A DNA stretch of 25,549 nucleotides from Macrostomum lignano (Eukaryota). The notes beneath the pieces were generated by a model. That model made no database searches. It saw only the letters and a list, made by a program, of their open reading frames with translations, and had not been told where the DNA came from. Where the stretch lies: the NCBI GenBank assembly GCA_002269645.1, contig NIVC01001041.1, positions 1-25,549 of the forward strand, written 5' to 3'. Every line of letters starts with the position of its first letter. Position 1 is the stretch's first letter. Below, in pieces: positions 1,501-25,549 of the stretch. A program made the position numbers and the translations under genes.

Positions 1501-1512
1501 GGCTAATAAAGA

Positions 1513-3281: not shown

Positions 3282-3409
3282 TTGGTCGCCGGCCCATGGG
3301 AGGGGCCAATATCGATACTGCATGGTTGGACACCCACAAAAACTCCAAGAAACATGAAAAAGCGCATAAAACCCGGTACGGCAGCTGCCAGCAATCTCTA
3401 TGCATCGCT

Positions 3410-3685: not shown

Positions 3686-3958
3686 TTTCGAATAATCACA
3701 GGGTAAAAAACTGAACGAAAAGAAAAATATTATAAGAAAAAAAGTTCACATTAATTAAGTAAGGTTAAACAAATCAACTTTAGTAGACATGGGACAATTA
3801 GATTAAAGTGCACTTGAGCAGAAGGGCCAAAAATTAACGTAATTGAGAATGGTAAAGCAGATCCACTTAAGTAAGCATCGGAGCCGAATACCTGCTACCA
3901 GCATACGGTGGGTTTGAGCTGAAGGCCATGGAAACACAGCAGTCAAGAGAAGCATAAT

Positions 3959-4672: not shown

Positions 4673-4865
4673 AGATTGTCATTCTGAGTTGGTATCGATT
4701 TTTTAATCAATGCAATCTGGAGACTGTGCAGAATGTCATCGAATAATTTTGATGGCACGGCAACTCTACAATTATGAGATTATGAGGTCCATGTTTATTG
4801 TTAATTTACTTGGATGCCTTTGATTAATTTATAACAAATCGTTCGTTTAGCATTTAGGCATTGAT

Positions 4866-5533
4866 TTAGGTCATAGACAATTGCGGTCATACCCAGTAGG
4901 TCATAGACAATTGCGTTCATGCTCAGTAGGTCATAGACAATTGCGTTCATGCTCAGTAGGTCATAGACAATTGCGTTCATGCTCAGTAGGTCATAGACAA
5001 TTGCGGTCATCCTCAGTAGGTCATCAGACAATTGCGGTCATACTCAGTAGGTCATCAGACAATTGCGGTCATGCTCAGTAGGTCATCAGACAATTGCGGT
5101 CACACCCAGCAGGTCATAGACAATTGCGGTCATACTCAGTAGGTCATAGACAATTGCGGTCACACCCAGCAGGTCATAGACAATTGCGGTCATGCTCAGT
5201 AGGTCATATGCAATTGCGGTCATGCTCAGTAGGTCATAGACAATTGCGGTCGTGCCCAGTAGGTCATAGGCAATTGCGGTCATGCTCAGTAGGTCATAGA
5301 CAATTGCGGTCATGCTCAGTAGGTCATAGACAATTGCGGTCATGCTCAGTAGGTCATAGGCAATTGCGGTCATGCTCAGTAGGTCATAGACAATTGCGGT
5401 TATGCTCAGTAGGTCATAGACAATCGCGGTCATACTCAGTAGGTCATAGACAATTGCGGTCATACTCAGTAGGTCATAGACAATTGCGGTCATGCTCAGT
5501 GGGTCATAGACAATTAGGGTCATACTCAGTACA
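4866..5533. repeat. 30-bp minisatellite (AGTAGGTCATAGACAATTGCGGTCATGCTC)n
   Basis: About 22 units with point variants. Confidence 0.97.
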
Positions 5534-5867
5534 TGTAGATCATAGACAATCATGATCACAACTCGTACATGTAGGGTAGCTGTGAAGAATCGGTCATAAA
5601 CAGTACATGAATTCAACGATCAAAATTAACAATAGCATGAAGCCTACGAACCCCTTTTACCTTCTATTCTACGCCCTTTCCCCTGATCTTACCCTCACCA
5701 GAATCTCACCCGAGTTTCACCAGAATCTCACAAAGATGGGGACAAAGCGACATGACATGCATGAATTAATAATTCTCCGATGTACGCCTGCATGCAGCCT
5801 ACCAGAAAATTATGATAACTTTGCTGGATATGAGAGGGTAGAGAGAAGAGTAAAGAAGACTGTCATA

Positions 5868-8219
5868 TCAAACAGGAGATTCCCGTGTCTAACAGGAGAC
5901 TCCCATGTCTAACAGGAGACTCCCATGTCTAACAGGAGACTCCCATGTCTAACAGGAGACTCCCATGTCTAACAGGAGACTCCCATGTCTAACAGGAGAC
6001 TCCCATGTCTAACAGGAGACTCCCATGTCTAACAGGAGACTCCCATGTCTAACAGGAGACTCCCATGTCTAACAGGAGACTCCCATGTCTAACAGGAGAC
6101 TCCCATGTCTAACAGGAGACTCCCATGTCTAACAGGAGACTCCCATGTCTAACAGGAGACTCCCATGTCTAACAGGAGACTCCCATGTCTAACAGGAGAC
6201 TCCCATGTCTAACAGGAGACTCCCATGTCTAACAGGAGACTCCCATGTCTAACAGGAGACTCCCATGTCTAACAGGAGACTCCCATGTCTAGCAGGAGAC
6301 TCCTGATCCCATGTCTAACAGGAGACTGCCATGTCTAACAGGAGACTGCCATGTCTAACAGGAGACTCCCATGTCTAACAAGAGACTCCCATGTCTAACA
6401 GGAGACTCCCATGTCTAACAGGAGACTCCCATGTCTAACAGGAGACTCCCATGTCTAACAGGAGACTCCCATGTCTAACAGGAGACTCCCATGTCTAACA
6501 GGAGACTCCCATGTCTAACAGGAGACTCCCATGTCTAACAGGAGACTCCCATGTCTAACAGGAGACTCCCATGTCTAACAGGAGACTCTCATGTCTAACA
6601 GGAGACTGCCATGTCTAACAGGAGACTCCCATGTCTAACAGGAGACTCCCATGTCTAACAGGAGACTCCCATGTCTAACAGGAGACTCCCATGTCTAACA
6701 GGAGACTCCCATGTCTAACAGGAGACTCCCATGTCTAACAGGAGACTCCCATGTCTAAAGGAGACTCCCATGTCTAACAGGAGACTCCCATGTCTAACAG
6801 GAGACTGCCATGTCTAACAGGAGACTCCCATGTCTAACAGGAGACTCCCATGTCTAACAGGAGACTCCCATGTCTAACAGGAGACTCCCATGTCTAACAG
6901 GAGACTCCCATGTCTAACAGGAGACTCCCATGTCTAACAGGAGACTCCCATGTCTAACAGGAGACTCCCATGTCTAACAGGAGACTCCCATGTCTAACAG
7001 GAGACTCCCATGTCTAACAGGAGACTCCCATGTCTAACAGGAGACTCCCATGTCTAACAGGAGACTCCCATGTCTAACAGGAGACTCCCATGTCTAGCAG
7101 GAGACTCCTGATCCCATGTCTAACAGGAGACTGCCATGTCTAACAGGAGACTGCCATGTCTAACAGGAGACTCCCATGTCTAACAGAGACTCCCATGTCT
7201 AACAGGAGACTCCCATGTCTAACAGGAGACTCCCATGTCTAACAGGAGACTCCCATGTCTAACAGGAGACTCCCATGTCTAACAGGAGACTCCCATGTCT
7301 AACAGGAGACTCCCATGTCTAACAGGAGACTCCCATGTCTAACAGGAGACTCCCATGTCTAACAGGAGACTCCCATGTCTAACAGGAGACTCTCATGTCT
7401 AACAGGAGACTGCCATGTCTAACAGGAGACTCCCATGTCTAACAGGAGACTCCCATGTCTAACAGGAGACTCCCATGTCTAACAGGAGACTCCCATGTCT
7501 AACAGGAGACTCCCATGTCTAACAGGAGACTCCCATGTCTAACAGGAGACTCCCATGTCTAAAGGAGACTCCCATGTCTAACAGGAGACTCCCATGTCTA
7601 ACAGGAGACTGCCATGTCTAACAGGAGACTCCCATGTCTAACAGGAGACTCCCATGTCTAACAGGAGACTCCCATGTCTAACAGGAGACTCCCATGTCTA
7701 ACAGGAGACTCCCATGTCTAACAGGAGACTGCCATGTCTAACAGGAGACTCCCATGTCTAACAGGCGACTCCCATGTCTAACAGGAGACTCCCATGTCTA
7801 ACAGGAGACTCCCATGTCTAACAGGAGACTCCCATGTCTAACAGGAGACTCCCATGTCTAACAGGAGACTCCCATGTCTAACAGGAGACTCCCATGTCTA
7901 ACAGGAGACTCCCATGTCTAACAGGAGACTCCCATGTCTAACAGGAGACTCCCATGTCTAACAGGAGACTCCCATGTCTAACAGGAGACTGCCATGTCTA
8001 ACAGGAGACTCCCATGTCTAACAGGAGACTGCCATGTCTAACAGGAGACTCCCATGTCTAACAGGAGACTGCCATGTCTAACAGGAGACTCCCATGTCTA
8101 ACAGGAGACTCCCATGTCTAACAGGAGACTCCCATGTCTAACAGGAGACTCCCATGTCTAACAGGAGACTCCCATGTCTAACAGGAGACTCCCATGTCTA
8201 ACAGGACACCATGTCTAAC
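5868..8219. repeat. 20-bp minisatellite A (AACAGGAGACTCCCATGTCT)n
   Basis: About 117 highly homogeneous units; internal ~805-bp duplicated variant pattern. Confidence 0.99.
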
Positions 8220-8640
8220 AGCAAGAGTGTGCATTCAGTTTAAAACCATACTCTGCTATCTAGAGTAGTCTCAAAAGTGTTTTCCCACCAAATTCGGTCC
8301 AAACAAAAGCAGAAATGCGGTTCTATTCTCATTTTCCTGCTCAAAACAGCGGCTGAGGTGGCTGAGCAGCCCTCATGCCCGCCATTGTCTCAGTTCAATG
8401 CAATGCGAAGCCACTGCAAACACTTATTTATGTACATTTCACAGCGCACTGAGTGAGCACAGACTCAAGTGTCTGCCAGCATCATTGATGCAGCATCAGC
8501 TGTTCAAAAGAGATGCACAGAATGGCTGATGCTCGTTTGAACACACTTTTGTGCAGATGAAGCAACAAGCAGCACCACCCAGCCTCCAGGTGAGCACATT
8601 GCTCATCTGTCCACAGACTCTCCGTGCTCGAGTCTCCCCC

Positions 8641-8654
8641 GTTGCCATGGCAAC
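8641..8654. promoter_or_regulatory. Perfect palindromic RFX X-box GTTGCCATGGCAAC
   Basis: Exact match to the canonical RFX-binding palindrome, in unique sequence; function not shown. Confidence 0.4.
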
Positions 8655-8889
8655 TGGAGCAGCTCTGCAGCGTCTCTGCAGTTAAGGGCTCTGCACATCT
8701 CTTTGCTCACTGCGTGAGGGGCCGAGCCGTGGGCAGCCTCAGACTTCATGACACTCTGCAAGCCCTTTGAAAACAATGGCCAGCTTCACTGCATGCCTGC
8801 TTCATCAGCTCTGCCTTCCTCCCACTGTTGTGTGCATTGCACTGAGTGAGGCTCAGAAATGATGCTGCGAAATATTGAAATATGAAATG

Positions 8890-9536
8890 GGACACAGCGG
8901 GTCACGGCAAGTCAGGACACAGCGGGTCACGGCAAGTCAGGACACAGCGGGTCACGGCAAGTCAGGACACAGCGGGTCACGGCAAGTCAGGACACAGCGG
9001 GTCACGGCAAGTCAGGACACAGCGGGTCACGGCAAGTCAGGACACAGCGGGTCACGGCAAGTCAGGACACAGCGGGTCACGGCAAGTCAGGACACAGCGG
9101 GTCACGGCAAGTCAGGACACAGCGGGTCACGGCAAGTCAGGACACAGCGGGTCACGGCAAGTCAGGACACAGCGGGTCACGGCAAGTCAGGACACAGCGG
9201 GTCACGGCAAGTCAGGACACAGCGGGTCACGGCAAGTCAGGACACAGCGGGTCACGGCAAGTCAGGACACAGCGGGTCACGGCAAGTCAGGACACAGCGG
9301 GTCACGGCAAGTCAGGACACAGCGGGTCACGGCAAGTCAGGACACAGCGGGTCACGGCAAGTCAGGACACAGCGGGTCACGGCAAGTCAGAACACAGCGG
9401 GTCACGCCAAGTCAGGACACAGCGGGTCACGGCAAGTCAGGACACAGCGGGTCACGGCAAGTCAGGACACAGCGGGTCACGGCAAGTCAGGACACAGCGG
9501 GTCACGGCAAGTCAGGACACAGCGGGTCACGGCAAG
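8890..9536. repeat. 25-bp minisatellite (GACACAGCGGGTCACGGCAAGTCAG)n
   Basis: About 26 units; only two substitutions visible (9391, 9407). Confidence 0.99.
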
Positions 9537-10011
9537 CCAAGCGGTGGCTGTATATTTAACTGAGAACTCTTGAGTAAGCACCGGACTTCCTGCTCCAACA
9601 GTTGCTAATAAAAAGTCAGTCCAAAAATCAAATACAAAAATCAGAGCCGGAAAAAGCGCCAAACCGGTGGCTGAAAAATGTGAAAAATTCTCGGCAACAG
9701 AAAATCTGGAGTAGGCAGTGAGCAGTCTGAGCAGATTGGGGAAATTGTGATTGGCTTTGTGCCAGAGTTTCAAAATCAACATTGATCAGCTTGAAACTGG
9801 AATGGCACTCGAGTCAGCTCAAAAATGTCTCATTAATTGAAAGGAGCAACCGGTAAAACAAACCCGGCAGTCAAATAAACAAAATTTGAATTCCGAATCG
9901 CAGACGAATAAACAAAACTGTGATTGGATAACTGATCCGGGCATCGGGAAGCAGCAGGTGATCAATAGACAAAACGATAATTCAAAATTTAAAATCTGAA
10001 TGAGCAGTTCG

Positions 10012-10487
10012 AACAAACAAAGCAGCCGGATAAACAAAATGCCCAATCGGATAAACAAAATGGGCAATCGGATAAACAAAATGGGCAATCAGATGAACAA
10101 AAACGGCAATCGGATAAACAAAAAGGGCAATCGGATAAACAAAAAGGGCAATCAAATAAACAAAAAGGTCAATCGGATAAACAAAAAGGACAATCGGATA
10201 AACAAAAAAGGGCAATCAGATAAACAAAAAGTTCAATCGGATAAACAAAAAGGGCAATCAAATAAACAAAAAGGGCAATCAGATAAACAAAAAAGGGCAA
10301 TCAGATAAACAAAAAGGTCAATCGGATAAACAAAAAGGGCAATCAAATAAACAAAAAGGGCAATCAGATAAACAAAAAAGGGCAATCAGATAAACAAAAA
10401 GGTCAATCGGATAAACAAAAAGGGCAATCGGATAAACAAAAAGAGCAATCGGATAAACAAAAAGAGCAATCAGATAAACAAAAAACA
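10012..10487. repeat. A-rich 21-22-bp minisatellite (GGATAAACAAAAAGGGCAATC)n
   Basis: About 22 units beginning ~65 nt 3' of the kinase stop codon (minus strand). Confidence 0.95.
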
Positions 10488-10551
10488 TCACCAAGCAAAA
10501 CCGGCCGCTCCAAGAGCCGCTCCGCTCCCTCACAGCCCATCGCTCTCGCAG

Positions 10552-11037
10552 TCAGGATGAGGCACTCAGGAAGCTGTGCCGCAGCAGCTCCGCGGTGTCC
10601 GCTCGCTTCCTCGGGTCATAGTCTACGCACCTGAGGTAGAAGTCCTTCAGGCCGGCTGAGAACCCGTCCGCAATCCGAGGCATCTTCTGCTTTCTAAACC
10701 GCAGAATGCCAATATTTTCAATTGGCTGGTCTCCATCAGGAGGCTGCATGGCCGTCAGCTCATACACGGTGCAGCCGAAGGCCCACACGTCGGTCTTGGC
10801 TGAGTACAGAAGTGATTTCAATTTTGTGTCGAACAGCTCCGGAGCCATGAAGTACATGGTACCTTTTGGTCCGAAGCCTGTGCTAAGACCGCAGGTCTTC
10901 TCAATCTCCTTGGCCAGACCGAAGTCGATCAGCTTGATGACGCCCTCGTTGGTGAGCATAATATTGGAGCTCTTAATGTCACGGTGCAAGATAGCGCCCT
11001 CCGGCTGGCAGTGCAGAAAGTTCAGGCCTGAGCAGAT
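10552..11037 (-). CDS. ANK-kinase gene, last exon: kinase C-lobe (STE11/MAP3K-like Ser/Thr kinase)
   Basis: [43 protein letters not shown], then TGA at 10554-10552; acceptor CTGCAG| at 11038, phase 0. Confidence 0.93.
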
Positions 11038-11085
11038 CTGCAGGAGCAGTTTTGAGCAGTCATGAGACCCCATACCTGCTCCCAC

Positions 11086-11353
11086 CCACACTGATCCCAC
11101 ACTAATCCCACACTGATCCCACACTGATCCCACACTGAACCCACAATGATCCCACACTGATCCCACAATGATCCCACACTGAACCCACAATGATCCCACA
11201 CTGATCCCACACTGATCCCACACTGATCCCACACTGATCCCACACTGATCCCACACTGATCCCACACTGATCCCACACTGATCCCACACAGATCCCACGC
11301 TGATCCCACACTGATCCCACACTAATCCCACACTGATCCTACACTGATCCCAC
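11086..11353. repeat. 11-bp minisatellite (CACTGATCCCA)n in intron 3 of the ANK-kinase gene
   Basis: About 24 units between donor CAG|GTGCGT (11389) and acceptor (11038). Confidence 0.97.
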
Positions 11354-11389
11354 CCATGCCAGGCAATGCCAGAGAACTCAGACACGCAC

Positions 11390-11774
11390 CTGTCTGGAGA
11401 AGTCCCTGACCCCGGACTCCTTGAACGGCTTTTTTTGACGCTGCATCAGCTCAAAGAGGCTGTGACCCGAGACCAGCTCGGTGAAGATGTACAGCCCATC
11501 CGACTTCTGCTCGCACTTGAGGAACTGCAGGATGTTGGGATGCGAGAGTCGCTTGAGGATCTCAACTCCCCGCTTCTCCATCTCGACGGCTCTCTGCAGC
11601 TTCCCCGATTGGCCGGTGCCGCTCAGGGGCAGCACCTTGACAGCCACCGTCTGGTTGCGGTCTGTGAGGGCCTTGTACACCTCACCGAATCCGCCACGGC
11701 CGATGAGCTGCTTCTTGTCGTCCTGCAGAATGAAGTCCCAGTCGGTGAAGCTGGGGTCCAGCTGCTTCTTGGCG
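11390..11774 (-). CDS. ANK-kinase gene exon 3: kinase N-lobe
   Basis: [67 protein letters not shown]; acceptor TTCATTTCATGTTTCAG| (phase 2), donor |GTGCGT (phase 0); 385 nt fits both phases. Confidence 0.92.
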
Positions 11775-11844
11775 CTGAAACATGAAATGAAGGAATTGAT
11801 GAATTTTGTGTTGCTTGGGGCTTTCTGAGTACTTTGGAGTCACT

Positions 11845-12586
11845 CAGCCTTCTGCGTCACTACTCTTATGCGTCACCAGCCTTCTGCGTCAACCACCCTT
11901 CTGCGTCACCACCCTTCTGCGTCACCACCCTTCTGCGTCACCACCCTTCTGCGTCACCACCCTTCTGCGTCACCACCCTTCTGCGTCACCACCCTTCTGC
12001 GTCACTACTCTAATGCGTCACCATCCTTATGCGTCACCACCCTTCTGCGTCACCAGCCTTCTGCGTCAACCACCCTTCTGCGTCACCACCCTTCTGCGTC
12101 ACCAACCTTCTGCGTCACCAGCCTTCTGCGTCACCACCCTTCTGCGTCACCACCCTTCTGCGTCACCACCCTTCTGCGTCACCACCCTTCTGCGTCACAA
12201 CCCTTCTGCGTCACCACCCTTCTGCGTCACCACCCTTCTGCGTCACCACCCTTCTGCGTCACCACCCTTCTGCGCACCACCCTTCTGCGTCACCACCCTT
12301 CTGCGTCACCACCCTTCTGCGTCACCACCCTTCTGCGTCACCACCCTTCTGCGTCACCACCCTTCTGCGTCACCACCCTTCTGCGTCACCACCCTTCTGC
12401 GTCACCACCCTTCTGCGTCACCACCCTTCTGCGTCACCACCCTTCTGCGTCACCACCCTTCTGCGTCACCACCCTTCTGCGTCACCACCCTTCTGCGTCA
12501 CCACCCTTCTGCGTCACAACCCTTCTGCGTCACCACCCTTCTGCGTCACCACCCTTCTGCGTCACCACCCTTCTGCGTCACCACCC
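11845..12586. repeat. 16-bp minisatellite (CCACCCTTCTGCGTCA)n in intron 2 of the ANK-kinase gene
   Basis: About 46 units. Confidence 0.97.
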
Positions 12587-12701
12587 TTTTGTCATGAGCA
12601 TCCTCGGGCGCCGTGAAGAGCCAGGTGCCTTTTGGCTGGTTGCCTGCGCTCAGACTGCAGGTTCTGATGAGTTCACTAACTGTCGCCTCATCATTTCTCA
12701 C

Positions 12702-12788
12702 CGAGTCTTTTCAGGCAGTCCGACCGGAGTCGGCCCAGGCGGCTGGACGCTCTGTCGAGCTCGTGGGCGGGGACGCGGAGCTGCAGCG
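12702..12788 (-). CDS. ANK-kinase gene exon 2: Pro/Arg-rich linker (AAAPRPRPRARQSVQPPGPTPVGLPEKTR)
   Basis: Acceptor CTCTTCCTACAG|, donor |GTGAGA; 87 nt, phase 2 at both ends, matching the neighbouring exons; GC-rich and stop-free. Confidence 0.65.
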
Positions 12789-13121
12789 CTGTAGGAAGAG
12801 TTTTACGAGTGAGCCGTTAAAAATGTCTGGGTCGCCAAGACGGCACTTAAACTCTGCTAATGCTTCGTGTATAAAAAGCCCCTGCAGATTGAGCTTTGGG
12901 TGGCGCTATATGGACATTGGGGGCGCGATCGGGAGATTGCGGCGCCACGAAGAGATTGGAGGCTCTCAAATCATTCAAGTGCCAATATTTTGAACATCAC
13001 ACCAAGTACATTCCTACTAAAATCGGAGAGTTTGAAACTTCGGAGAGTTTGATGGCACTTGCACTCGCTGATGCTTTGTGTTTAAAAACTGCAGATTGAG
13101 CTGTGGGTGGGGGTTGTGGGC

Positions 13122-13350
13122 CCATAGGGAGGTTGGAGGCGCCATGGGGAGATTGGAGACGCCGTTGGGAGGTTGGAGGCGCCATGAAGAGGTTTAAGGC
13201 GCCATGGGGAGGTTGGGGGCGCCATGGGGAGGTTGGAGGCGCCATGAGGAGGTTGGAGGCGCCATGGGGAGGTTGGGGGCGCCATGGGGAGGTTGGGGGC
13301 GCCATGGGGAGGTTGGAGGCGCCATGTAGAGGTTGGGGGCGCCATGAGGA
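13122..13350. repeat. 21-bp minisatellite (GGAGGTTGGAGGCGCCATGGG)n in intron 1 of the ANK-kinase gene
   Basis: About 11 units. Confidence 0.95.
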
Positions 13351-13505
13351 GCTGTACTGACAGATTCATGACACCCTCGCTTGACTGCGGCGCTGCTGAG
13401 AATTTCAGGGCGCCGATCATCAAAGCAATGAATTTCAATGAATTTTCGCCAAAAAACATTTTCAGAATTTTCAGTGTCAGGCAGCAGCTCTCAGTCAGGA
13501 CTCAC

Positions 13506-14857
13506 CCAGCTGAGGCGGCAGTCGGCGCTGAGCTGCCAGCGGGAGGCCGAGAGGCTTCGAGCTGCCGCTGCGTGGAGGAAATCCAGGCCCGCTTTGCTGA
13601 CTGGTCTCTAAAGTAGCAATAACTCTCAACATAATCAGCCGGTGTTTTGCCCTCGTTGTTCTTCAAGCCGAGCATTTCGGCTCCGATTTGGTCAAAAATG
13701 AACTGAAGAGAGTCGACTGGCTGCCACTGAGCGGCCAAATGGACGGCCGTGTCACCTCTAGAGTCAGGAACTGTGAGACAGTCGCTGCCGAGCTCCTTCA
13801 CCAGCCACTCCAGATTTGAATTGTCAGACTTCTTAGCAGCAAAGTGAAATGCTGTTCTATCATCATCTCCCTTCAGCCGAAAGCAGTCAGTTCCGATCTG
13901 TCTCTTGATCCACTCCAGCGACTCGATGCTCTGATGCTGAGCGGCCAAATGGACGGCCGTGTCACCTCTAGAGTCAGGAACTGTGAGACAGTCGCTGCCG
14001 AGCTCCTTCACCAGCCACTTCAGCATTGAATTGTCAGACTTCTGAGCAGCAATGTGAAATGCCGTTCTATCACCATCTCCCTTCAGCCGAAAGCAGTCAG
14101 TTCCGATCTGTCTCTTGATCCACTCCAGCGACTCGATGCCCTGATGCTCAGCGGCCAAATGGACGGCCTTGTTCCCGTATTTGTAAGGAACTGTGAGACA
14201 GTCGCTGCCGAGCTCTTTCACCAGCCACTTCAGATTTGAATTGTCAGACTTCACAGCAGCAAAGTGAAATGCTGTTGTATCACATTCTCCCTTCAGCCGA
14301 AAGCAGTCAGTTCCGATCTGTCTCTTGATCCACTCCAGCGACTCGATGCCCTGATGCTGAGCGGCCAAATGGACGCCCGTGGTACCGTCTTCGTCAGGAA
14401 CTGTGAGACAGTCGCTGCCGAGCTCCTTCACCAGCCACTTCAGACAAGAGTTGCTTTTTCTGTTCATAGCGGCAAAGTGAGCGACTGTCTCTCCATTTTT
14501 AGCGGCAATTCTCAAGCAGCCTCTGCCTCCCTTCTCTTTAACCAGCTCCATCCAAGATTCGTCCTGATGCTGGGCAGCCAAGTGCACTGGAGTCTGCCCT
14601 CTACCATTTCCACGTGTCAGACAGCCGGTTCCGAATCTGTCAATCAGCAGCTCCAGGCACGACGAGCTCACCGGCTTGCAAGCCACGTGTTGGGCCAGCG
14701 GCATTTTGTGAAGCTCTTCAAAGGGATAGTCTTGCTTGTCGAACCCGCCCACCTCCAGCTCGATGTTGCTGCCGACCTCACCGCACAGTCGCTGCAGCTC
14801 CTCGCTGTCTCCAGCCTCCAGCGCCGCTCTCAGCTTCCGCTTCATCTCTGTTGCCAT
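13506..14857 (-). CDS. ANK-kinase gene exon 1: ankyrin-repeat array
   Basis: 450 codons with repeated G-x-T-A/P-x-H-x-A-A motifs; start context GCCATGG with an in-frame upstream TAG at 14890-14888; perfect donor GG|GTGAGT at 13505 (phase 2). Confidence 0.95.
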
Positions 14858-14863
14858 GGCTAC
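14850..14863 (-). promoter_or_regulatory. X-box-like motif GTAGCCATGGCAAC overlapping the ANK-kinase start codon
   Basis: Fits the GTHNYY-AT-RRNAAC X-box consensus; may be a by-product of Kozak context plus Met-Ala-Thr codons. Confidence 0.25.
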
Positions 14864-15470
14864 ACAGCTTCTCCTAGCAGCGCTTCTCTACCGATCTGCT
14901 GTCTGCCGCAGCTGTTCCACACGGCTTCAAACTGAGTGCTTTGCTCTTCTTCAAGCGAATTTGCCTGCCAGCTCAGCAGCAGCAGCAAAAGTCCGGCTGT
15001 CACGGACTGAAATCTCTGAGCTCTCCCTGTGCAGAGAAATTTGTTTAAATGGACTGAGGCCGATTCTCTTCTCTGACCCAGCGGCTGAGTTTGAGGGCTG
15101 ATTGGGTGCCAGGGGGCCCGGCAGCTGCTCTGCTCAGCGGGGTGAGAGATGCAGGAGCAGTGAGATGCTGCGAGCTCTGCTGATTTAAACAATGAGAGCT
15201 GACTGTGGCTGCGTGCTCGGCATAGCAAGTGCATTGCCAGTGGGCAGGGGTGAAGGGGCGGCAGCTGAGACACGAGGGGAGAGAGATGGAGGGGGAGGGA
15301 GGGCAGGGCTGAGGCCTGGAAACCAAGCGGAGCTCTCTGACGATTTTCAATTCAGTTTGCAATTGTATGGCAAAAATTTTGCAGAAAAATGCTTATAACT
15401 GAGGATTTTTTGTTGCTGAACTCGAAACAGATGGAGAATGGTCGCTTGGGTTTGCCAGCGACACTTTAAG

Positions 15471-15978
15471 TCAGTATCTAACAGGTGACGTCAGTATCTA
15501 ACAGGTGACATCAGTGTCTAACATGTCACTCTAGTATCTAACAGGTGACGTCAGTATCTAACAGGTGACACCAGTATCTAACAGGTGACATCAGTATCTA
15601 ACAGGTGACATCAGTATCAAAAAGGTGACATCAGTATCTAACAGGTGACATCGATATCTAACAGGTGACATAAGTGTCTCACAGCTGACATCAGTATCTA
15701 ATACGTGACTTCTTTATCTAACAGGTGACGTCAGTATCTAACAGGTGACGTCAGTATCTAACAGGTGACATCAGTATCATACAAGTGACATCAGTATCTA
15801 ACAGGCGATATCGGTATCAAACACGTGACACCATTATCTAACAGGTGACATCAGTATCTAACAGGTGACATCAGTATCATACAAGTGACATCAGTATCTA
15901 ACAGGCGATATCGGTATCAAACACGTGACACCATTATCTAACAGGTGACATCAGTATCTAACAGGTGACATCAGTATC
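15471..15978. repeat. 20-bp minisatellite B (TCAGTATCTAACAGGTGACA)n, segment 1
   Basis: About 25 moderately diverged units; the same unit resumes at 17509 and 17931. Confidence 0.95.
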
Positions 15979-16419
15979 GTGCGTGCGTGTAATTGATTTT
16001 TTCGAGAATGGCTCAACCGATTCTCTTCAAACTTGCACCATTCGATCAGAAATTTTCCTGGGATGGTGCATGCATCTTGGCTAAGAAATTGATCAATATT
16101 AAAGGAATTAAATATTCGAAAAAACTGATTTTCTGCAAAGGTCAAGCAGCTCTTTCGACCTGAAATGCATTGTAAAAATGCTAGAGAAAAACCTGACTGA
16201 CTGAATTTCAATTCTGATAAAGATTGCATCACAGCAAGTTGAAAACAGTGCCAAAGAAATGCACACACGACTTGATTTAAATTGCGTAACCATATTGCTA
16301 ACTTAAATTGAGACTGATACTGGCTGACTGAGAAATTGATTATGTCATAACTTTTTACTCTAACCGATTTGCTATAAGAATGAATTATAAGGGCCACAAT
16401 TCATGTTCTCCAATCGACA

Positions 16420-16488
16420 AGAGATAGCATAGATGCGAACAGACTGGACTGCTAATTCAGCGACCTGGGTTCGAATCTAAGTAGTGCA
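16420..16488 (+). pseudogene. tRNA-derived relic / SINE-head-like sequence
   Basis: A-box-like TAGCATAGATG, anticodon arm CTGGA-CTGCTAA-TTCAG, B-box GGTTCGAATC, T-run at ~16495-16501; the acceptor stem does not pair. Confidence 0.5.
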
Positions 16489-16549
16489 AAATAATTTTTT
16501 TATTAAAACATCTTAAAAACAAAATGCTAAGCATAAAAGAAGCACAATG

Positions 16550-17082
16550 TCAAACAAAAGTGGCACCATTTCAAACATTAAAGGCCACCATGTCAAACAT
16601 ATATGTGACTCCATGTCTAACATTAAAGAGCCACCATGTCAAACATTAAAGAGCCACCATGTCGAACATTAAAGAGCCATCATGTCGAACATTAAAGAGC
16701 CACCATGGTGAACATTAAGAAGCCATCATTACAGACATTAAGGTGCCACCAGGTCAAACATTAAAGAGCCACCATGTCGAACATAAAAGAGCCACTATGT
16801 CAAACATCAACGAGTCACCATGTCAAGCGTATAAGTGACTCCATGTCAGACATTAAAGAGCCATCATTGCAGACATTAAGATGCCACCAGGTCAAACATT
16901 AAAAAGCCACCATGTCAAACATAAAAGAGCCACCATGTCAAACATTAAAGAGCCACCATGTCGAACATAAAAGAGCACCATGTCGAACATTAAAGAGCCA
17001 TCATTACAGACATTAAGATGCCACCAGGTCAAACATTAAAGAGCCACCATGTCAAACACAAAACAGCTACCATGTCAAACAT
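16550..17082. repeat. Diverged 23-bp minisatellite (AAACATTAAAGAGCCACCATGTC)n with ~137-bp higher-order blocks
   Basis: About 22 units; the GCCATCATT(A/G)CAGACATTAAG-TGCCACCAGGTC block recurs near 16725, 16860 and 16997. Confidence 0.9.
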
Positions 17083-17086
17083 AAAT

Positions 17087-17352
17087 GGGGTGCCTACTAT
17101 CTTGGAGTGCTTGCTATCTGGGGTGCTTGCTATTAGGTGGATGCTTGCTATCTGGGGTGCCTGCTATCTTGGAGTGCTTGCTATCTGGAGATGCGTGCTA
17201 TCTGGGGGTGCTTGCTATCTGGGGGGGGATGCTTGCTATCTTGGGGGTTCTAGCTATCTGGGGGTGCTTGCTATTAGGTGGATGCTTGCTATCTGGGGTG
17301 CCTGCTATCTGGAGATGCTTGCTATCTGGGGGTGCTTGCTATCTGGGGGGTT
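17087..17352. repeat. 16-bp minisatellite (GGGGTGCTTGCTATCT)n
   Basis: About 16 diverged units. Confidence 0.92.
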
Positions 17353-17508
17353 GCTTGCTGTCCTGGGATGTTTTCTTTTTGCATTACACTTCATTTGAGC
17401 AGTTTTTCTATTGTCTATGTGAAGGCTTTATTTGGCCGTCTTTTTGATACTTGTAGAGAGCTAGAGATTCTATCTAGATGCCCCCCATCGGGGGGCGAAG
17501 ATTGCTAG

Positions 17509-17650
17509 TCAGTATCTAACAGGTGACATCAGTATCTAACAGGTGACCTCGGTATCTAACATTTGACACCAATATCTAACAGGTTACACCAGTATCTAAC
17601 AGGTTACACCAGTATCTAACAGGTTACACCAGTATCTAACAGGTGACATC
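17509..17650. repeat. 20-bp minisatellite B, segment 2
   Basis: About 7 units. Confidence 0.92.
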
Positions 17651-17898
17651 TGTGGCAAAGTGCCACTGGACTGATCTGAGGTTGCTTGGGGTGTAGGGTT
17701 GCGTGGGCACGTTGATTATTGCTTAAGTAGCTCGTAAATACACCTCATTGATTGCTCGTCCTCGCGTGTACGTGTATCGTGTACTAATGTACGTCTTGCT
17801 TATTAAATATATATGCGCGTGCGCTAACTAGCAGTCGCTCAAGTTTTCTCAAGAAGTTCTTACTTACTTAACCAGTGGAGTCCGTGTGAGTTACTACA
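17651..17898. mobile_element. Solo-LTR-like insertion (248 bp)
   Basis: TGTGGCAA...TTACTACA termini (TG..CA, 6/8 inverted match), internal TATTAAATATATA; it interrupts satellite B; no clean TSD, PBS or PPT. Confidence 0.45.
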
Positions 17899-17930
17899 TC
17901 TAATATAGTAATAATATAGGATCTAGTATA

Positions 17931-18146
17931 GTATCTAACAAGTGACATCAGTATCTAACGGGTGACATCGGTATCTAACAGGTGACATCGGTATCTAACG
18001 GGTGACATCGGTATCTAACGGGTGACATCGGTATCTAACGGGTGACATCGGTATCTAACGGGTGACACCAGTATCTAACAGAAGACACCAGTATCTAAAA
18101 GGTGACACCAGTATCTAACAGGTGACATCAGTATCTAACGGGTGAC
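17931..18146. repeat. 20-bp minisatellite B, segment 3
   Basis: About 11 units. Confidence 0.92.
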
Positions 18147-18642
18147 TGGCCACTGGAGAGACCGCGCGTTAGTGCCCAGTCGACGAAAAATATCGCGCCA
18201 CTTAACTAATCAATAATTAATTCGTCACTTGACAGTCATGATACTTGATTTTCTGATTTAAATTTAGTGAAATTTAATTTCCACGACACGCACAATTTGT
18301 GCACGAATTTGAAAGTTGGATTCAATTTCCTTGGATTGATGCTTTGAAAAAATTACCTGATCAAAGAAATGATCCATTAAAATTGCTATTTTTTAATTGC
18401 TTGGTTTAGAGGACTGCTGAGACTTTAAACTATACAGCCAGGGTGTCCTAGTAGCTTGACTACGGGCTACTGTGGTATATTTGATTGGGTAAATATTTCA
18501 TGTAACACAATATCCGCTAACATCCGCATAGAGAAGCTATTATTTTGTATGGGCTAATTGGGGAATTAAAGCAAGCTTACGCGAAAATAGTTAATGTTTT
18601 TTAGCATGTAGATATTATGTCAAACATTTGGAAAGTCTCGCA

Positions 18643-18698
18643 TCAACGCTTGACTTCAAACTTGACGTCTTTGCACTCGTTGATTGTTTCGCAAGAAT
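18643..18698 (-). CDS. Neurophysin-domain gene, last exon: (D)SCETINECKDVKFEVKR*
   Basis: Acceptor TTTTTTTCTATTTTAG|; phase 1 matches the upstream donor; it supplies the last two Cys with exact neurophysin spacing (CC-x4-C-x5-C); TGA at 18645-18643. Confidence 0.88.
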
Positions 18699-18790
18699 CT
18701 AAAATAGAAAAAAATGTCAGTAAAGATATCTGGATTGTGAAATATTTTATTTGAAACTTTCTATTTGGTAGAGAAGGAACAGCTTCTTAC

Positions 18791-19033
18791 CAGCAGTGCA
18801 GCAGATGCCTCTGGAAGCGCAGCGACCCTTGCCTCCCAGACAGACGGTGGCGACGCGACCGCAGCCAAGGACTTTCGCTGGCAGACGGCGACACGCGGCG
18901 GTGTCCGGGCCGAAGCCGACGCGATATCCGCCGTGGGGGTGACAGCAGATGGCGCGGCCGAAACAGCGGCCCCAGCCGTGGGAGCAGCTCAGGCAGGGAC
19001 CGTTGATGGTATTGGTTGCCGGTACATGACTGC
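18791..19033 (-). CDS. Neurophysin-domain gene, core exon (oxytocin/vasopressin-type precursor)
   Basis: SHVPATNTINGPCLSCSHGWGRCFGRAICCHPHGGYRVGFGPDTAACRRLPAKVLGCGRVATVCLGGKGRCASRGICCTA matches the neurophysin pattern CxxC..GRCFGxxICC..C..C..C..GRCA..GICC; perfect donor G|GTAAG at 18790; 5' acceptor ambiguous (19033, 19029 or 19068). Confidence 0.88.
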
Positions 19034-19245
19034 CTGCGGGTTTGAAGTTATGGTAGACTTTAAAATACCTGTGTTTGGATTCGGCGTGCCGTTACATTAA
19101 TTTGAGGTTCAAGGCCCAGGGCTGGCTGGCCATCTCAAAATGCCCACAGTGTGCATACTGTTGTAGCACAGTGGTACAGCGTCGGACTATCGAAAAAAGC
19201 CACAGAACTCTTAACGGTTCCTGGATATTGAAAAGCTCGGTGCAG

Positions 19246-19690
19246 CCAGCTGTGCTACTGCAAGTACTGAATATGGCTCGCTTGACTGCAATCTGCATGA
19301 ATTTGTGTCTGACTTTGCTGCCTTCACTTCACCCAGCTGTGCTACTGCAAGTACTGAATATGGCTCGCTTGACTGCAATCTGCATGAATTTGTGTCTGAC
19401 TTTGCTGCCTTCACTTCACCCTGCTGTGCTACTGCAAGTACTGAATATGGCTCGCTTGACTGCAGTCTGCATGAATTTGTGTCTGACTTTGCTGCCTTCA
19501 CTTTACCCAGCTGTGCTACTGCAAGTACTGAATATGGCTCGCTTGACTGCAGTCTGCATGAATTTGTGTCTGACTTTGCTGCCTTCACTTCACCCTGCTG
19601 TGCTACTGCAAGTACTGAATATGGCTCGCTTGACTGCAGTCTGCATGAATTTGTGTCTGACTTTGCTGCCTTCACTTCACCCTGCTGTGG
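19246..19690. repeat. 87-bp minisatellite, 5 units
   Basis: TGTGCTACTG recurs at 19251, 19338, 19425, 19512 and 19599. Confidence 0.95.
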
Positions 19691-20207
19691 CACCTCATCA
19701 ATGGCGCTTTGTGCTCAAATGCAGTTTATTTATAAATTTATTAATAATTTTGCATTTTGTACTCACGGTTTATTTTGCTAATCTTTATACACAGTTCAGG
19801 TGTGCATTTTGTAATCCACCTTTGATAATCTTTGGATTTATTTATCCGGTGCAACAGACTGACCCTGCTTCTACTCGCCCCGACCCTAGCCATCCAAGCA
19901 GCTCCAGACCAGCCGAGCTCAATGCCTAGAGGACAATGGCGAAGCTGAGGTTTAAGGGCCGAGCCGGCAGCCTGCGAACGCGTGTCAAAAGAAGACTCGC
20001 TGCAAATGCTTTTTTAGGAGGGGGGGGGGTTGATGGCTGCCTAAAAGCGGCACAGAGACAAGATGCGTGAGCGCCAACCCTGCCCCGCTCAAACCATTCA
20101 CTGCTTTGCATTGCGCTTGTGCTCTCAGCTAAAATTTACTGCCTTTGATATTCGGCACTTCGTGTTTTCAGATGCGAGCCTCCCACTCATATTGGGCGTT
20201 TAGAATT

Positions 20208-21366
20208 AGGGAGAGGGGCAGGGAGAGACAGGCTGGGATGTAGGGTGAGGGGCAGGGAGAGACAGGCTCGGATGTAGGGTGAGGGGCAGGGAGAGAAAGG
20301 CTGGGATGTAGGGTGAGGGGCAGGGAGAGAGACAGGCTGGGATGTAGGGTGAGGGGCACGGAGAGAGAAAGGCTGGGATGTAGGGTGAGGGGCAGGGAGA
20401 GAGACAGGCTGGGATGTAGGGTGAGGGGCAGGGAGAGAGACAGGCTGGGATGTAGGGTGAGGGGCAGGGAGAGAGACAGGCTGGGATGTAGGGTGAGGGG
20501 CAGGGAGAGAGACAGGCTGGGATGTAGGGTGAGGGGCAGGGAGAGAGACAGGCTGGGATGTAGGGTGAGGGGCAGGGAGAGAGACAGGCTGGGATGTAGG
20601 GTGAGGGGCAGGGAGAGAGAAAGGCTGGGATGTAGGGTGAGGGGCAGGGAGAGAGAAAGGCTGGGATGTAGGGTGAGAAGCAGGGAGGGAGACAGGCTGG
20701 GATGTAGGGTGAGGGGCAGGGAGAGAGACAGGCTGGGATGTAGGGTGAGGGGCAGGGAGAGAGACAGGCTGGGATGTAGGGTGAGGGGCAGGGAGAGAGA
20801 CAGGCTGGGATGTAGGGTGAGGGACAAGAAGAGATAGGCTGGGATGTAGGGTGAGAAGCAGGGAGGGAGAAAGGCTGGGATGTAGGGTGAGGGGCAGGGA
20901 GAGAGACAGGCTGGGATGTAGGGTGAGGGGCAGGGAGAGAGAAAGGCTGGGATGTAGGGTGAGGGGCAGGGAGAGAGAAAGGCTGGGATGTAGGGTGAGA
21001 AGCAAGGAGAGAGACAGGCTGGGATGTAGGGTGAGGGGCAGGGAGAGAGACAGGCTGGGATGTAGGGTGAGGGGCAGGGAGAGAGACAGGCTGGGATGTA
21101 GGGTGAGAGGCAGGGAGGGAGACAGGCTGGGATGTAGGGTGAGGGGCAGGGAGAGAGACAGGCTGGGATGTAGGGTGAGGGGCAGGGAGAGAGACAGGCT
21201 GGGATGTAGGGTGAGGGCAGGGAGAGAGAAAGGCTGGGATGTAGGGTGAGGGGCAGGGAGAGAGAAAGGCTGGGATGTAGGGTGAGGGGCAGGGAGAGAG
21301 ACAGGCTGGGATGTAGGGTGAGGGGCAGGGAGAGAGACAGGCTGAGATGTAGGGTGAGAGGCAGGG
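20208..21366. repeat. 36-bp G-rich minisatellite, array 2 (same family as 2146-3281)
   Basis: About 32 units, dominant variant GGGAGAGAGA. Confidence 0.98.
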
Positions 21367-21454
21367 CTGGCAAAATACCTTCCAAAATACCTTCAAAATC
21401 GCGAACAAACAGCTGCCATCAATCTAATCACTTCATCACTTCATAACTTGCATC

Positions 21455-22112
21455 ACTTCTTGGCCCTCGTGGATATATAGTCGTTCAGTTAAAAAATAGT
21501 TTTAAATCTCCGCAAACAATATCGCTTACAATACGCTACTCATAGTACTCATAAGAATACCATTTGTTGTTAAAGAGAAGAAGGCTGCATGGAATTTTTC
21601 CAGAAACTCGTTGGCACCTGAAGATTCGCTATGCTGGAGTTTTTTACTCAAAAGCGAATGACAAAACTCTTACACTGCCGTGAGTCGTGCCTCGGCTCTC
21701 GGGGGTGGGTCAGCTTGTGTTTTGTTGCGCACCTGTAAGAATTCAATTTTATTGCACATTCGAGTCCGCCTCTCCATCGATTTCATTGTCCGCATTTGGC
21801 TTGTAAAAAAACTGGCTTCTCAAGCAGCTGATTGCATTTTATAACAAATGCTCGCTCAGCTCGAGTTTTGTTTAGCTGCGAGCTTGAGCAGTCCTGCTCA
21901 CAGGGCTCTCTTCGCCAGCTACATGAGCACGCATATCAACTGACAGAATTCAGCAATCCACCCTCGCTTTGGCCCACTGATGTTCCACACTTCTTTATAT
22001 TTTTGCCTCCAAGAAGTCCAAAAGCAACAGCCAATCAGATTTTGTTGCCGATGCGCAGATTTTTAGTGGCGATAAAAGTGAAAATTGAATACTGATTTAT
22101 TATTTCGAAAAC
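21455..22112. repeat. Dispersed flank B, copy 2 (with ~400 bp extra internal sequence)
   Basis: Homology blocks colinear with 3410-3685. Confidence 0.65.
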
Positions 22113-22482
22113 GTTGGACTACCTTAGAAAATGAGAAACAGTCCATCACAGGCGCGTGTGGTTGGTGCTGACTCACACAGCCATCCCTCAGGTAGCTGAC
22201 TGCTCACACAGCCAGTGCAGTTACATGTGCATTATTTATCCGGTGCAACAGACTGGCTCAGCAGTTCAGCATTAATAATCTAGTTTTTCATCTGCATTGC
22301 TCAAATAAAAGTATTGCTGTTTCAATGTTTCTGTCAGATCACTAATGGATGACAATGCAGAGCAGCACATGTAAAGTATGTGCATTTGAGCATAAAGTTC
22401 TCGGCTGGTGTTTGTCTTTGCTATTTTGTTCGTGGTTTGGAATCTCAGATTCGTGCTCATGTGCCATGACTAATATCTCATG

Positions 22483-24662
22483 CACACAGTCATTTCTCAT
22501 GTGCAATGAAACATATCTCATGCACCCAGCCATTGCTCACGTGCAATGACACATATCTCATGCACACAGCCATTGCTCATGTGCAATGACACATATCTCA
22601 TGCACACAGCCATTGCTCATGTGCATGACCATATCTCATGCACACAGCCATTGCTCATGTGCAATGACCCATATCTCATGCACACAGCCATTGCTCATGT
22701 GCAATGACCCATATCTCATGCACACAGCCATTGCTCATGTGCAATGACACATATCTCATGCACACAGCCATTGCTCATGTGCAATGACCCATATCTCATG
22801 CACACAGTCATTTCTCATGTGCAATGACACATATCTCATGCACACAGCCATTGCTCATGTGCAATGACCATATCTCATGCACACAGCCATTGCTCATGTG
22901 CAATGACCCATATCTCATGCACACAGCCATTGCTCATGTGCAATGACCATATCTCATGCACACAGCCATTGCTCATGTGCAATGACCCATATCTCATGCA
23001 CACAGCCATTGCTCATGTGCAATGACCCATATCTCATGCACACAGCCATTGCTCATGTGCAATGACCCATATCTCATGCACACAGCCATTGCTCATGTGC
23101 AATGACACATATCTCATGCACACAGCCATTGCTCATGTGCAATGACCCATATCTCATGCACACAGCCATTGCTCATGTGCAATGACACATATCTCATGCA
23201 CACAGCCATTGCTCATGTGCAATGACCCATATCTCATGCACACAGCCATTGCTCATGTGCAATGACACATATCTCATGCACACAGCCATTGCTCATGTGC
23301 ATGACCCATATCTCATGCACACAGCCATTGCTCATGTGCAATGACCCATATCTCATGCACACAGCCATTGCTCATGTGCTATGACCCATATCTCATGCAC
23401 ACAGCCATTTCTCATGTGCAATGACCCATATCTCATGCACACAGCCATTGCTCATGTGCCATAACTAATATCTCATGCACACAGCCATTGCTCATGTGCC
23501 ATGACACATATCTCATGCACACAGCCATTTCTCATGTGCCATGACACATATCTCATGCACACAGCCATTGCTCATGTGCCATGACCCATATCTCATGCAC
23601 ACAGCCATTGCTCATGTGCAATGACACATATCTCATGCACACAGCCATTTCTCATGTGCCATGACACATATCTCATGCACACAGCCATTGCTCATGTGCC
23701 ATGACCCATATCTCATGCACACAGCCATTGCTCAAGTGCCATGACTAATATCTCATGCACACAGCCATAGCTCATGTGCCATGACCCATATCTCATGCAC
23801 ACAGCCATTGCTCATGTGCAATGACCCATATCTCATGCACACAGCCATTGCTCATGTGCCATAACTAATATCTCATGCACACAGCCATTGCTCATGTGCC
23901 ATGACCCATATCTCATGCACACAGCCATTGCTCATGTGACATGACACATATCTCATGCACACAGCCATTGCTCATGTGCAATGACACATATCTCATGCAC
24001 ACAGCCATTGCTCATGTGCCATGACCATATCTCATGCACACAGCCATTGCTCATGTGCCATGACCCATATCTCATGCACACAGCCATTGCTCATGTGCTA
24101 TGACCCATATCTCATGCACACAGCCATTGCTCATGTGCCATGACCCATATCTCATGCACACAGCCATTGCTCATGTGCCATGACCCATATCTCATGCACA
24201 CAGCCATTGCTCATGTGCTATGACCCATATCTCATGCACACAGCCATTGCTCATGTGCCATGACCCATATCTCATGCACACAGCCATTGCTCATGTGCCA
24301 TGACTAATATCTCATGCACACAGCCATTGCTCATGTGCCATGACTAATATCTCATGCACACAGCCATTGCTCATGTGCAATGACCCATATCTCATGCACA
24401 CAGCCATTGCTCATGTGCCATGACCCATATCTCATGCACACAGCCATTGCTCATGTGCCATGACCCATATCTCATGCACACAGCCATTGCTCATGTGCTA
24501 TGACCCATATCTCATGCACACAGCCATTGCTCATGTGCCATGACACATATCTCATGCACACAGCCATTGCTCATGTGCCATGACCCATATCTCATGCACA
24601 CAGCCATTGCTCATGTGCCATGACACATATCTCATGCACACAGCCATTGCTCATGTGCCATA
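22483..24662. repeat. 40-bp minisatellite (TATCTCATGCACACAGCCATTGCTCATGTGCAATGACCCA)n
   Basis: About 54 units, no unique spacers. Confidence 0.99.
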
Positions 24663-24704
24663 ACCATCTGATTGTCTCTATTGTGTTTCTCCAACCATCT
24701 CCCT

Positions 24705-24808
24705 TTTACACACCCCTCCCACCCATCCCCCTCTCACCTATCCCCCTCTCACCCATCCCCCTCTCACCCATCCCCTCTCACCCATCCCCCTCTCATCCTC
24801 CCCCTCTC
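24705..24808. repeat. C-rich ~15-bp repeat (CCCATCCCCCTCTCA)n
   Basis: About 6 imperfect units. Confidence 0.85.
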
Positions 24809-24814
24809 GCCAGC

Positions 24815-24936
24815 TTCTCTATTCTCCATCAGATCCCAGCTCAGTTTCTCTATTCTCCATCAGATCCCAGCTCAGCTTCTCTATTCTCCATCAGATCCCA
24901 GCTCACCTTCTCTATTCTCCATCAGATCCCAGCTCA
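24815..24936. repeat. 31-bp minisatellite (TATTCTCCATCAGATCCCAGCTCAGCTTCTC)n
   Basis: 4 units. Confidence 0.92.
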
Positions 24937-24949
24937 AACCCAAAAAACG

Positions 24950-25169
24950 CTTGTTTTCTCCTGTTTTGAGAAAGCTAAAAAAGCTAAAAGTGCAGCTGGC
25001 CGCCAGCCCAGACAGTGGGGGGGGGGGCAGGCAGGGTGCTCAAGCACAATGCAGAGTCTCCATTGTGCGAGGCTGGGGCTGCAACTCATTCGGGAGCAGC
25101 CGCCACTGCAGCCTCAGACAGCTCAGGTTTGCGCTGCTCATCTCGGCAGCTTCATCGCTAATTAAATCT
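24950..25169. repeat. Dispersed repeat A, copy 2
   Basis: Aligns with 1513-1751. Confidence 0.85.
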
Positions 25170-25549
25170 TCAACCTTCATCGTTAGCGGCCCCACCCAGC
25201 TCAGCACTCGCAGTGCGACAGTCTGGCGTGATAAAAGCGGCCGGCAAAGAGAAAACTGCTCGAGTTCGCAATCACCCCATACTGGCCTCCCGAACCACCC
25301 AACCCCCCCCCCCCGCAACCCCTGCCTGAGACAAACAAGTCCAGCTACAACGCAACTCCACCAGCTCACTGCTCAAAACAGATCAGGTTGCCCCCCAGAG
25401 TCTGCCAACTGCAGGGAGGCTGGCAGAGCGGTGCGCTGGCCTGAGAATAGCGAGCGAGCAGGTTAATTACTGCTTAATTACTGCTTGAGGTCGAGCTGGC
25501 CTCTCTAACCACCCGCTCTCTACGACTCAAGACTGCTTTTGTCATAAAT

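Follow-up and report, generated by a model that had tools for sequence, protein, structure and literature searches.

The 25,549-nt stretch of contig NIVC01001041.1 from the flatworm Macrostomum lignano (assembly GCA_002269645.1), hereafter the window, carries on its minus strand, between positions 19033 and 18643, the two last coding exons of a gene with a neurophysin domain, the hormone-carrier domain of vasopressin/oxytocin (VP/OT) precursors. When spliced, these exons give a product of 99 amino acids (aa). The gene is probably a divergent neurophysin paralogue with a remodelled 5′ end, one of a multi-copy M. lignano family, and this copy of it is probably impaired. The members of this small family share two 3′ exons encoding a complete but divergent neurophysin domain that ends KR-stop. 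The 5′ end has been remodelled, with the phase-0 intron before the first conserved cysteine (Cys1) gone and a phase-1 junction 13 codons upstream in its stead. In a transcribed paralogue the domain is fused to a 75-aa exon without a signal peptide, and the family as a whole is probably an orphan or decaying neurophysin paralogue instead of a working OT/VP hormone gene. A first-pass annotation of the window had proposed an OT/VP-family hormone precursor or, failing that, a divergent neurophysin-only paralog. The former is not supported: no signal-peptide or nonapeptide exon was found in the 6.5 kb upstream in the window or in about 20 kb of the paralogous locus, exon 1 of the paralogue is non-secretory, the first intron is displaced and the binding motif is replaced. 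The latter fits best.

Exon structure and identity of the domain

The features of the gene are as follows; residue n of the spliced peptide corresponds to position 19034-3(n-1), and slashes mark exon boundaries here and below.

19036 to 19245, minus strand: upstream block of 210 nt, 100% identical to the paralogous locus, with no usable start or signal peptide
19034 to 19035, minus strand: AG of the 3′ splice acceptor (..AAACCCGCAG/GC, ending CCCGCAG)
18791 to 19033, minus strand: 243-nt central coding exon, beginning and ending in phase 1, from translation
18924 to 18926, minus strand: Tyr37 codon TAT, at the sixth of 14 conserved cysteines; TGT in the paralogous locus
18881 to 18913, minus strand: codons of C48-RRLPAKVLG-C58, which replaces CxEENYLPSPC in the alignment with 23 VP/OT neurophysins
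18699 to 18790, minus strand: intron, 92 nt, phase 1, GT..AG, GTAAGAAG...TTTCTATTTTAG
18646 to 18698, minus strand: last coding exon segment, (D)SCETINECKDVKFEVKR, with Cys13, Cys14 and a C-terminal KR
18643 to 18645, minus strand: TGA stop codon
18341 to 18642, minus strand: probable 3′ untranslated region or flank, collinear with the paralogue, with indels

The spliced peptide reads GSHVPATNTINGPCLSC...CCTADSCETINECKDVKFEVKR up to the stop. The GC-rich central exon codes for (G)SHVPATNTINGP followed by neurophysin Cys1 to Cys12, with tyrosine at the sixth position, and is 95% identical (tblastn) to residues 76-156 of PAA80927.1, a M. lignano paralogue. Its donor reads G/GTAAG and the intron ends in TTTTAG. 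After TTTCTATTTTAG the last exon opens with ATTCTTGC and completes positions 72-79 of the Pfam profile; joining 18791 to 18698 yields GSHVPATNTINGPCLSCSHGWGRCFGRAICCHPHGGYRVGFGPDTAACRRLPAKVLGCGRVATVCLGGKGRCASRGICCTADSCETINECKDVKFEVKR and then the stop. Read without splicing, the frame meets a stop 13 codons into the intron and the match to Hormone_5 falls to 46.3 bits over profile positions 3-71. The splice therefore supplies the last two conserved cysteines, with the correct CC-x4-C-x5-C spacing. There is no copeptin in the window gene, whose product ends KR-stop, and the probable 3′ untranslated region contains a single ATTAAA-type signal, at 18397. Because the neurophysin frame is without an in-frame Met and the central exon starts in phase 1, a further upstream coding exon is required.

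The spliced peptide matched Pfam Hormone_5 (PF00184) with E=1.6e-13 and 51.8 bits, against a gathering cut-off of 27.2, covering 3-79 of the 79 profile positions; hmmscan at E<=1 gave no second family. The paralogue PAA80927.1 scored 53.1 bits against the same profile. A phmmer search of the PDB returned bovine neurophysins only, the best being 1npo (neurophysin II, E=1.4e-6). As a sequence match this lies far beyond chance. An AlphaFold2 model reached a mean predicted local distance difference test (pLDDT) value of only 59.8, from an input alignment itself made of neurophysins; its top 10 Foldseek matches in the PDB were all bovine neurophysins (template modelling scores of 0.50-0.64), which agrees with a neurophysin identity but, for a model built from a neurophysin alignment, is not independent of the sequence match.

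Introns were also mapped in the genomic loci of Lymnaea conopressin and goat AVP. Intron 2 lies between CC-x-x and x-S-C at one aligned position, and in one phase, in all three genes:

Window: GCT G/gt..ag/AT TCT TGC, phase 1
Goat AVP: AAC GAC G/gt..ag/AG AGC TGC, phase 1
Lymnaea conopressin: GAT TCA G/gt..ag/AA TCA TGT, phase 1

That this diagnostic phase-1 intron has been kept is strong evidence for descent of the window domain from a VP/OT-type precursor gene. The first intron differs. In goat AVP (CAG/gt..cag/TGT) and Lymnaea conopressin (GAG/gt..cag/TGC) it is in phase 0 directly before Cys1, whereas the 5′ junction in the window is in phase 1, 13 codons upstream of Cys1, and the ancestral phase-0 intron is absent.

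Much of the first-pass annotation was thus borne out. The in-phase two-exon splice that it had drawn has the same two junctions in the transcript-derived PAA80927.1, the neurophysin domain stands above the gathering cut-off of its profile, copeptin is indeed missing and the phase-1 intron after the second CC agrees in position and phase with goat AVP and Lymnaea conopressin. The peptide is also exactly as it had been written; the change of Cys6 to tyrosine (13 conserved cysteines, not 14) had been overlooked.

Paralogous copies and the hormone-binding segment

The nearest proteins are four M. lignano entries, A0A1I8IKP1, A0A1I8I0Z5, A0A1I8I2P0 and PAA80927.1 (A0A267G698; BOX15_Mlig008727g1), which share 94-97% identity with the window peptide over 98-99 aa. 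They are named as hypothetical or uncharacterised proteins, or as 'GRANULINS' or 'EB domain' proteins, and carry PF00184 as a precomputed Pfam assignment. The window copy is identical to none of them, having tyrosine for the sixth cysteine and 2-5 other substitutions, and its peptide is absent from its four-member 90% cluster. The earlier suggestion that the gene was likely unannotated is therefore right for this exact copy, which is not in the protein collection, and wrong for the family, with four near-identical paralogues in GenBank and UniProt. An exhaustive HMMER search of 1.84 billion representatives (E<=1e-3) found no relative outside this cluster save one low-complexity repeat protein, which matched through 'ICCHP' and was rejected as spurious. 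A literature search on the gene identifier Mlig008727 found no paper.

PAA80927.1 is encoded on NIVC01000558.1 (L001 in the coordinates below), which is collinear, in reverse orientation, with window positions 9115-25549 at 93-98% identity. Its residues 76-156 and 157-174 map exactly to the two window exons. Judging by this collinearity, the window is a duplicated or homeologous copy of the NIVC01000558.1 locus; 180 Mb of the M. lignano assembly lie in duplicate blocks that are at least 95% identical (PMC5730564). RNA-seq and transcript assemblies were the sole basis of the Mlig_3_7 GenBank annotation (StringTie, TACO, TransDecoder; PMC5730564), and so the junctions are RNA-supported in the paralogue.

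Over the 297 nt of coding exons, the window and the paralogous locus differ at 5 positions (1.7%), 4 nonsynonymous and 1 synonymous, and the last exon is 100% identical. Copy-specific differences include TAT/TGT at 18925, CCC/TCC and GTC/ATC. The resulting ratio of nonsynonymous to synonymous divergence (pN/pS) is 1.3, which gives no sign of constraint but is a value drawn from 5 differences only and without statistical power. The 92-nt intron has about 7 substitutions and a 5-nt indel (roughly 8%) with both splice sites kept; divergence of the intron and of the 3′ flank is 5-10%. Weak constraint, gene conversion or neutrality could each account for this pattern, which does not decide between them. 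Likewise, the perfect identity of the 210 nt at 19036-19245 may reflect constraint, on a regulatory element or an unrecognised exon, or local gene conversion.

A closer inspection of the alignment reveals that the segment CxEENYLPSPC reads CRRLPAKVLGC in five of five family members (the window copy and its four paralogues). The second acidic residue of CxEENYLPSPC is present in all 23 of the aligned VP/OT neurophysins, Lymnaea included. In crystal structures of bovine neurophysin, Glu47 binds the α-amino group of the hormone. With this segment replaced, canonical hormone binding and carriage are unlikely for the M. lignano family. A further change is confined to the window copy. The sixth cysteine, which is Cys in all four database paralogues and in all VP/OT neurophysins, is tyrosine here, so that the window copy has 13 of the 14 conserved cysteines and each of the four paralogues has 14. 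This position is the equivalent of bovine Cys34, which pairs with Cys28 in the 28-34 disulfide, and without it one cysteine would be left unpaired. The window copy is therefore probably structurally impaired, or else a pseudogene copy from the recent M. lignano genome duplication.

The gene's 5′ end and the surrounding sequence

The searches for a start, a signal peptide and a hormone-coding exon were negative throughout. On the gene strand, no open reading frame (ORF) combining Met with a hydrophobic stretch was found in window 19035-25549 (6.5 kb), and a scan of L001 9001-20175 for signal-peptide ORFs on the same strand also gave none, an exon outside the scanned sequence being possible. A regular-expression scan of all six window frames for the CxxxxC(P)xG nonapeptide motif followed by Gly-basic returned nothing, as did relaxed CxxxxC..G-basic scans of the gene strand in window 19035-25549 and L001 1-20175. 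Upstream on the gene strand (window and L001 1-20175) there are no Gly-basic-basic codons followed by a phase-1 GT donor, and no NG-hydrophobic-aromatic..basic motif occurs in any window frame. Exon 1 of PAA80927.1, for its part, encodes 75 aa and starts MLVKRKTMATPLRVPPQASATRHHG with no hydrophobic core. Its sequence (MLVKRKTMATPLRV...ASRQRQE) is hydrophilic, is joined over a 10-kb satellite-filled intron, matches no Pfam family and lacks any dibasic or amidation site adjoining the domain. The counterpart of this exon would map about 1 kb past the right edge of the window.

Three further candidates for the missing 5′ end or hormone were considered and rejected. In M. lignano the last three letters of the spliced leader are ATG (PMC8629364), but this does not provide a start in the neurophysin frame: added at AG 19034 or 19030, the leader gives AVMYRQ...stop or SCTGNQ.... 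A cryptic proximal exon 1 could be drawn in frame from an ATG at 19133-19131 (MASQPWALNLKL), a donor AT/GTAACG at 19096/19095 and an acceptor at 19030/19029. It encodes no signal peptide, though, its donor is weak, and it is at odds with the junction that RNA supports in the paralogue. Finally, a Cys-x7-Cys-Y-P-N-V-G stretch encoded in L001 10001-10225, within exon 1 of the paralogue (HCGDHGTPLCYPNVGTR), has a faint look of a VP/OT ring and tail and could be thought a degenerate hormone. It has no signal peptide, amidation site or dibasic site, lies 31 residues before the first neurophysin cysteine and is probably due to chance.

Tandem repeats cover about 60% of the window, and the first-pass description of the gene as buried among satellites was apt. 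Directly upstream of the neurophysin gene, an 87-bp tandem repeat at 19246-19689 (5.1 copies, 98% matches) leaves a 160-aa ORF (GEVKAAKSDTNSCRLQSSEPYSVLAVAQQ repeated) on the gene strand, since 87 nt make 29 codons. This ORF was rejected, having no significant Pfam family and being intronic in the model of the paralogue. A 36-bp satellite of the GGGTGAGGGGCAGGGAG.GAGACAGGCTGGGATGTA family forms two arrays of about 31-32 copies each (2151-3256 and 20207-21366), 17 kb apart and flanking the genes. The second falls within the presumed first intron of the neurophysin gene and gives artefactual minus-strand ORFs (PSLSLSLPLTLH..., up to 405 aa).

Downstream, at 10552-14857 on the same minus strand, lies a neighbouring gene. 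One ORF (13502-14857) encodes ankyrin repeats (Ank_2, E=7.5e-36) and two more (11378-11680 and 10552-11385) encode the N- and C-lobes of a Pkinase domain (E=1.9e-12 and 1.9e-33, respectively), in agreement with the calls of an Ank+Pkinase gene and a Pkinase gene at L001. Inside the kinase-containing ORF, a tandem repeat of 11 bp (11085-11353) is translated as a repeated unit. Between this neighbour and the neurophysin gene, window 15900-18340, a stretch of about 2.4 kb just downstream of the 3′ end of the gene, has no counterpart in L001 and so was either inserted in one copy or deleted from the other. Arrays of one and the same 20-bp repeat (CAGTATCTAACAGGTGACA), at 15471-15978, 17510-17648 and 17930-18146, border this stretch, which contains further arrays, of 23 bp and 17 bp, at 16532-17367. 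Window 1-9414 is a satellite block with periods of 12, 36, 29, 30, 20 and 25 bp. Its counterpart in L001 (1235-8943) is found upstream of the first exon of the model rather than downstream of the kinase gene, although L001 has a similar block behind its kinase gene as well (29038-29907). The two genes thus have satellite blocks to either side, and the unit as a whole may be part of a larger tandem arrangement.

Alternative readings and known vasopressin/oxytocin systems

A 2020 review considered VP/OT signalling to be lost in Platyhelminthes (PMC7181382). Kobayashi et al. (2022) described platytocin and its receptor in polyclads and named four M. lignano VP/vasotocin precursor genes, PAA85176.1, PAA50340.1, PAA46766.1 and PAA87831.1, as reciprocal-BLAST orthologues of VP/vasotocin precursors, with no clear VP/vasotocin receptor orthologue in this species (PMC8896804). 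Genes of this type in M. lignano are thus already published, and the window locus is not the first flatworm OT/VP gene. The four accessions were neither among the relatives found by single-sequence search nor among the exhaustive HMMER matches at E<=1e-3. With a profile that included human and Lymnaea baits, the best 120 matches listed were mostly vertebrate and did not include them, and a profile of the M. lignano domain with CPxGGKR baits brought up no further M. lignano protein. (One alignment with short hormone baits was discarded, as the baits had been misplaced onto the CFGRAICC motif.) Having never surfaced in these searches, the four must, as far as sequence similarity tells, be no closer to the window family than vertebrate neurophysins are. 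By accession and by absence from the searches, the window family appears to form a neurophysin lineage of its own, and a more divergent one.

Several observations weigh against a divergent paralogue with an impaired copy in the window. All five known copies keep the open frame and both splice sites, four of the five keep all 14 cysteines, and the paralogue is transcribed. The exons are less diverged than the intron and the last exon is identical, which hints at some constraint or at gene conversion; pN/pS, having no power, is uninformative here. The Tyr37 codon could be a single-base assembly error, and for both the disulfide pairing and the role of Glu47 the bovine neurophysin structures are the source. 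An exon for a signal and peptide could lie past the sequence examined, be split or be non-canonical, and exon 1 of the paralogue would itself fall about 1 kb outside the window. Furthermore, the separation from the four precursors of Kobayashi et al. is based on accessions and absence from searches.

It is conceivable, if rather doubtful, that the copies form an expressed 'orphan' neurophysin family, detached from the VP/OT hormone and repurposed as the carrier of another peptide or for a role other than carriage. If so, this would be a flatworm case of a neurophysin domain outliving its hormone, in a species without a recognisable VP/OT receptor. A functional family would offer a tractable example of a hormone-carrier domain after loss of hormone or receptor, M. 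lignano being open to transgenesis and RNA interference; a decaying one would document the VP/OT system dissolving in the M. lignano lineage. In either case the window locus would add a second, more divergent neurophysin family in M. lignano, in several near-identical copies from the recent genome duplication.

The exons might instead belong, as the 3′ part, to a functional neuropeptide precursor that is secreted, in which a peptide not of the VP/OT type accompanies the neurophysin domain and the true first exon went undetected. Analogous cases would be the NG-peptide precursors of deuterostomes and, in hoplo- and heteronemerteans, the vasotocin-derived peptides without cysteines. The maintenance of frame, splice sites and 14 cysteines in four of five copies would suit such a precursor, as would the lower divergence of exons than intron, the transcription of the paralogue and the 210 nt conserved without change upstream of the exon, while a changed binding motif would suit a changed ligand. 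Neurophysin domains on non-VP/OT peptides are documented, namely in the NG peptides and in diverged hoplo-/heteronemertean vasotocin paralogues (10.1101/2021.03.03.433790). However, no gene-strand ORF resembling a signal peptide occurs in the 6.5 kb of window or in the L001 sequence scanned upstream, the transcript-derived model begins with a hydrophilic exon free of dibasic or amidation sites near the domain, the window has no NG-type motif, pN/pS is about 1, and the 1.84 billion representatives include no homologue from other organisms. We regard this alternative as improbable.

A bona fide, platytocin-like OT/VP precursor, with a small exon 1 far upstream past the satellites or in a gap, is less probable again. 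The neurophysin domain with its conserved intron 2 is what such a gene would have, VP/vasotocin-type precursors exist in M. lignano and polyclads (PMC8896804), and satellite-packed introns, in a window that is 60% tandem repeat, make a distant exon conceivable. Yet no nonapeptide motif was found in any window frame or on the gene strand of L001 1-20175, intron 1 differs in position and phase from goat and Lymnaea, and the EENY/Glu47 motif, which does not vary among 23 VP/OT neurophysins, is missing. Moreover, the RNA-based model joins a different, non-secretory exon, the accession of the window family is not among the four VP/vasotocin precursors listed for M. lignano (PMC8896804), and the profile biased towards M. 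lignano, with its CPxGGKR baits, gave no closer relative in the species.

A chance cysteine-rich ORF, or a granulin or EB-module domain, is refuted: the automatic UniProt names of A0A1I8IKP1 and A0A1I8I2P0 ('GRANULINS domain-containing' and 'EB domain-containing') are its support, while the Pfam scan at E<=1 yields Hormone_5 alone, well over cut-off, PF00184 is the only Pfam family of the cluster, the PDB sequence search yields neurophysins only, with the fold search in line with it, 13 of 14 cysteines line up and the intron has kept its position. The granulin and EB-domain names that the paralogues have in databases should give way to neurophysin.

The window gene can be compared with several named systems. 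The PAA80927.1 family has the same two exon junctions, the same CRRLPAKVLGC motif and the same collinear neighbourhood as the window copy. VP/OT-type precursors such as Lymnaea conopressin and platytocin have the cysteine framework in common with the window domain at about 30-41% identity, and precursors of the oxytocin and conopressin type are, like the window gene, without copeptin. The CGPGG loop of VP/OT neurophysins is CSHGW in the window, however, and CFGP is CFGR; VP/OT-type genes also differ from the window gene in having a signal peptide and CxxxxCPxG-GKR, neither of them found upstream here, another place and phase of intron 1, and EENY (Glu47). The M. lignano precursors of Kobayashi et al. 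come from the same species under other accessions and presumably have a neurophysin domain too. The NG-peptide and diverged nemertean precursors have kept their signal peptide and, directly upstream of the domain, a peptide that can be identified, neither of which was seen for the window gene, but they provide a precedent for a neurophysin domain persisting after its Cys-bridged hormone has been lost or replaced.

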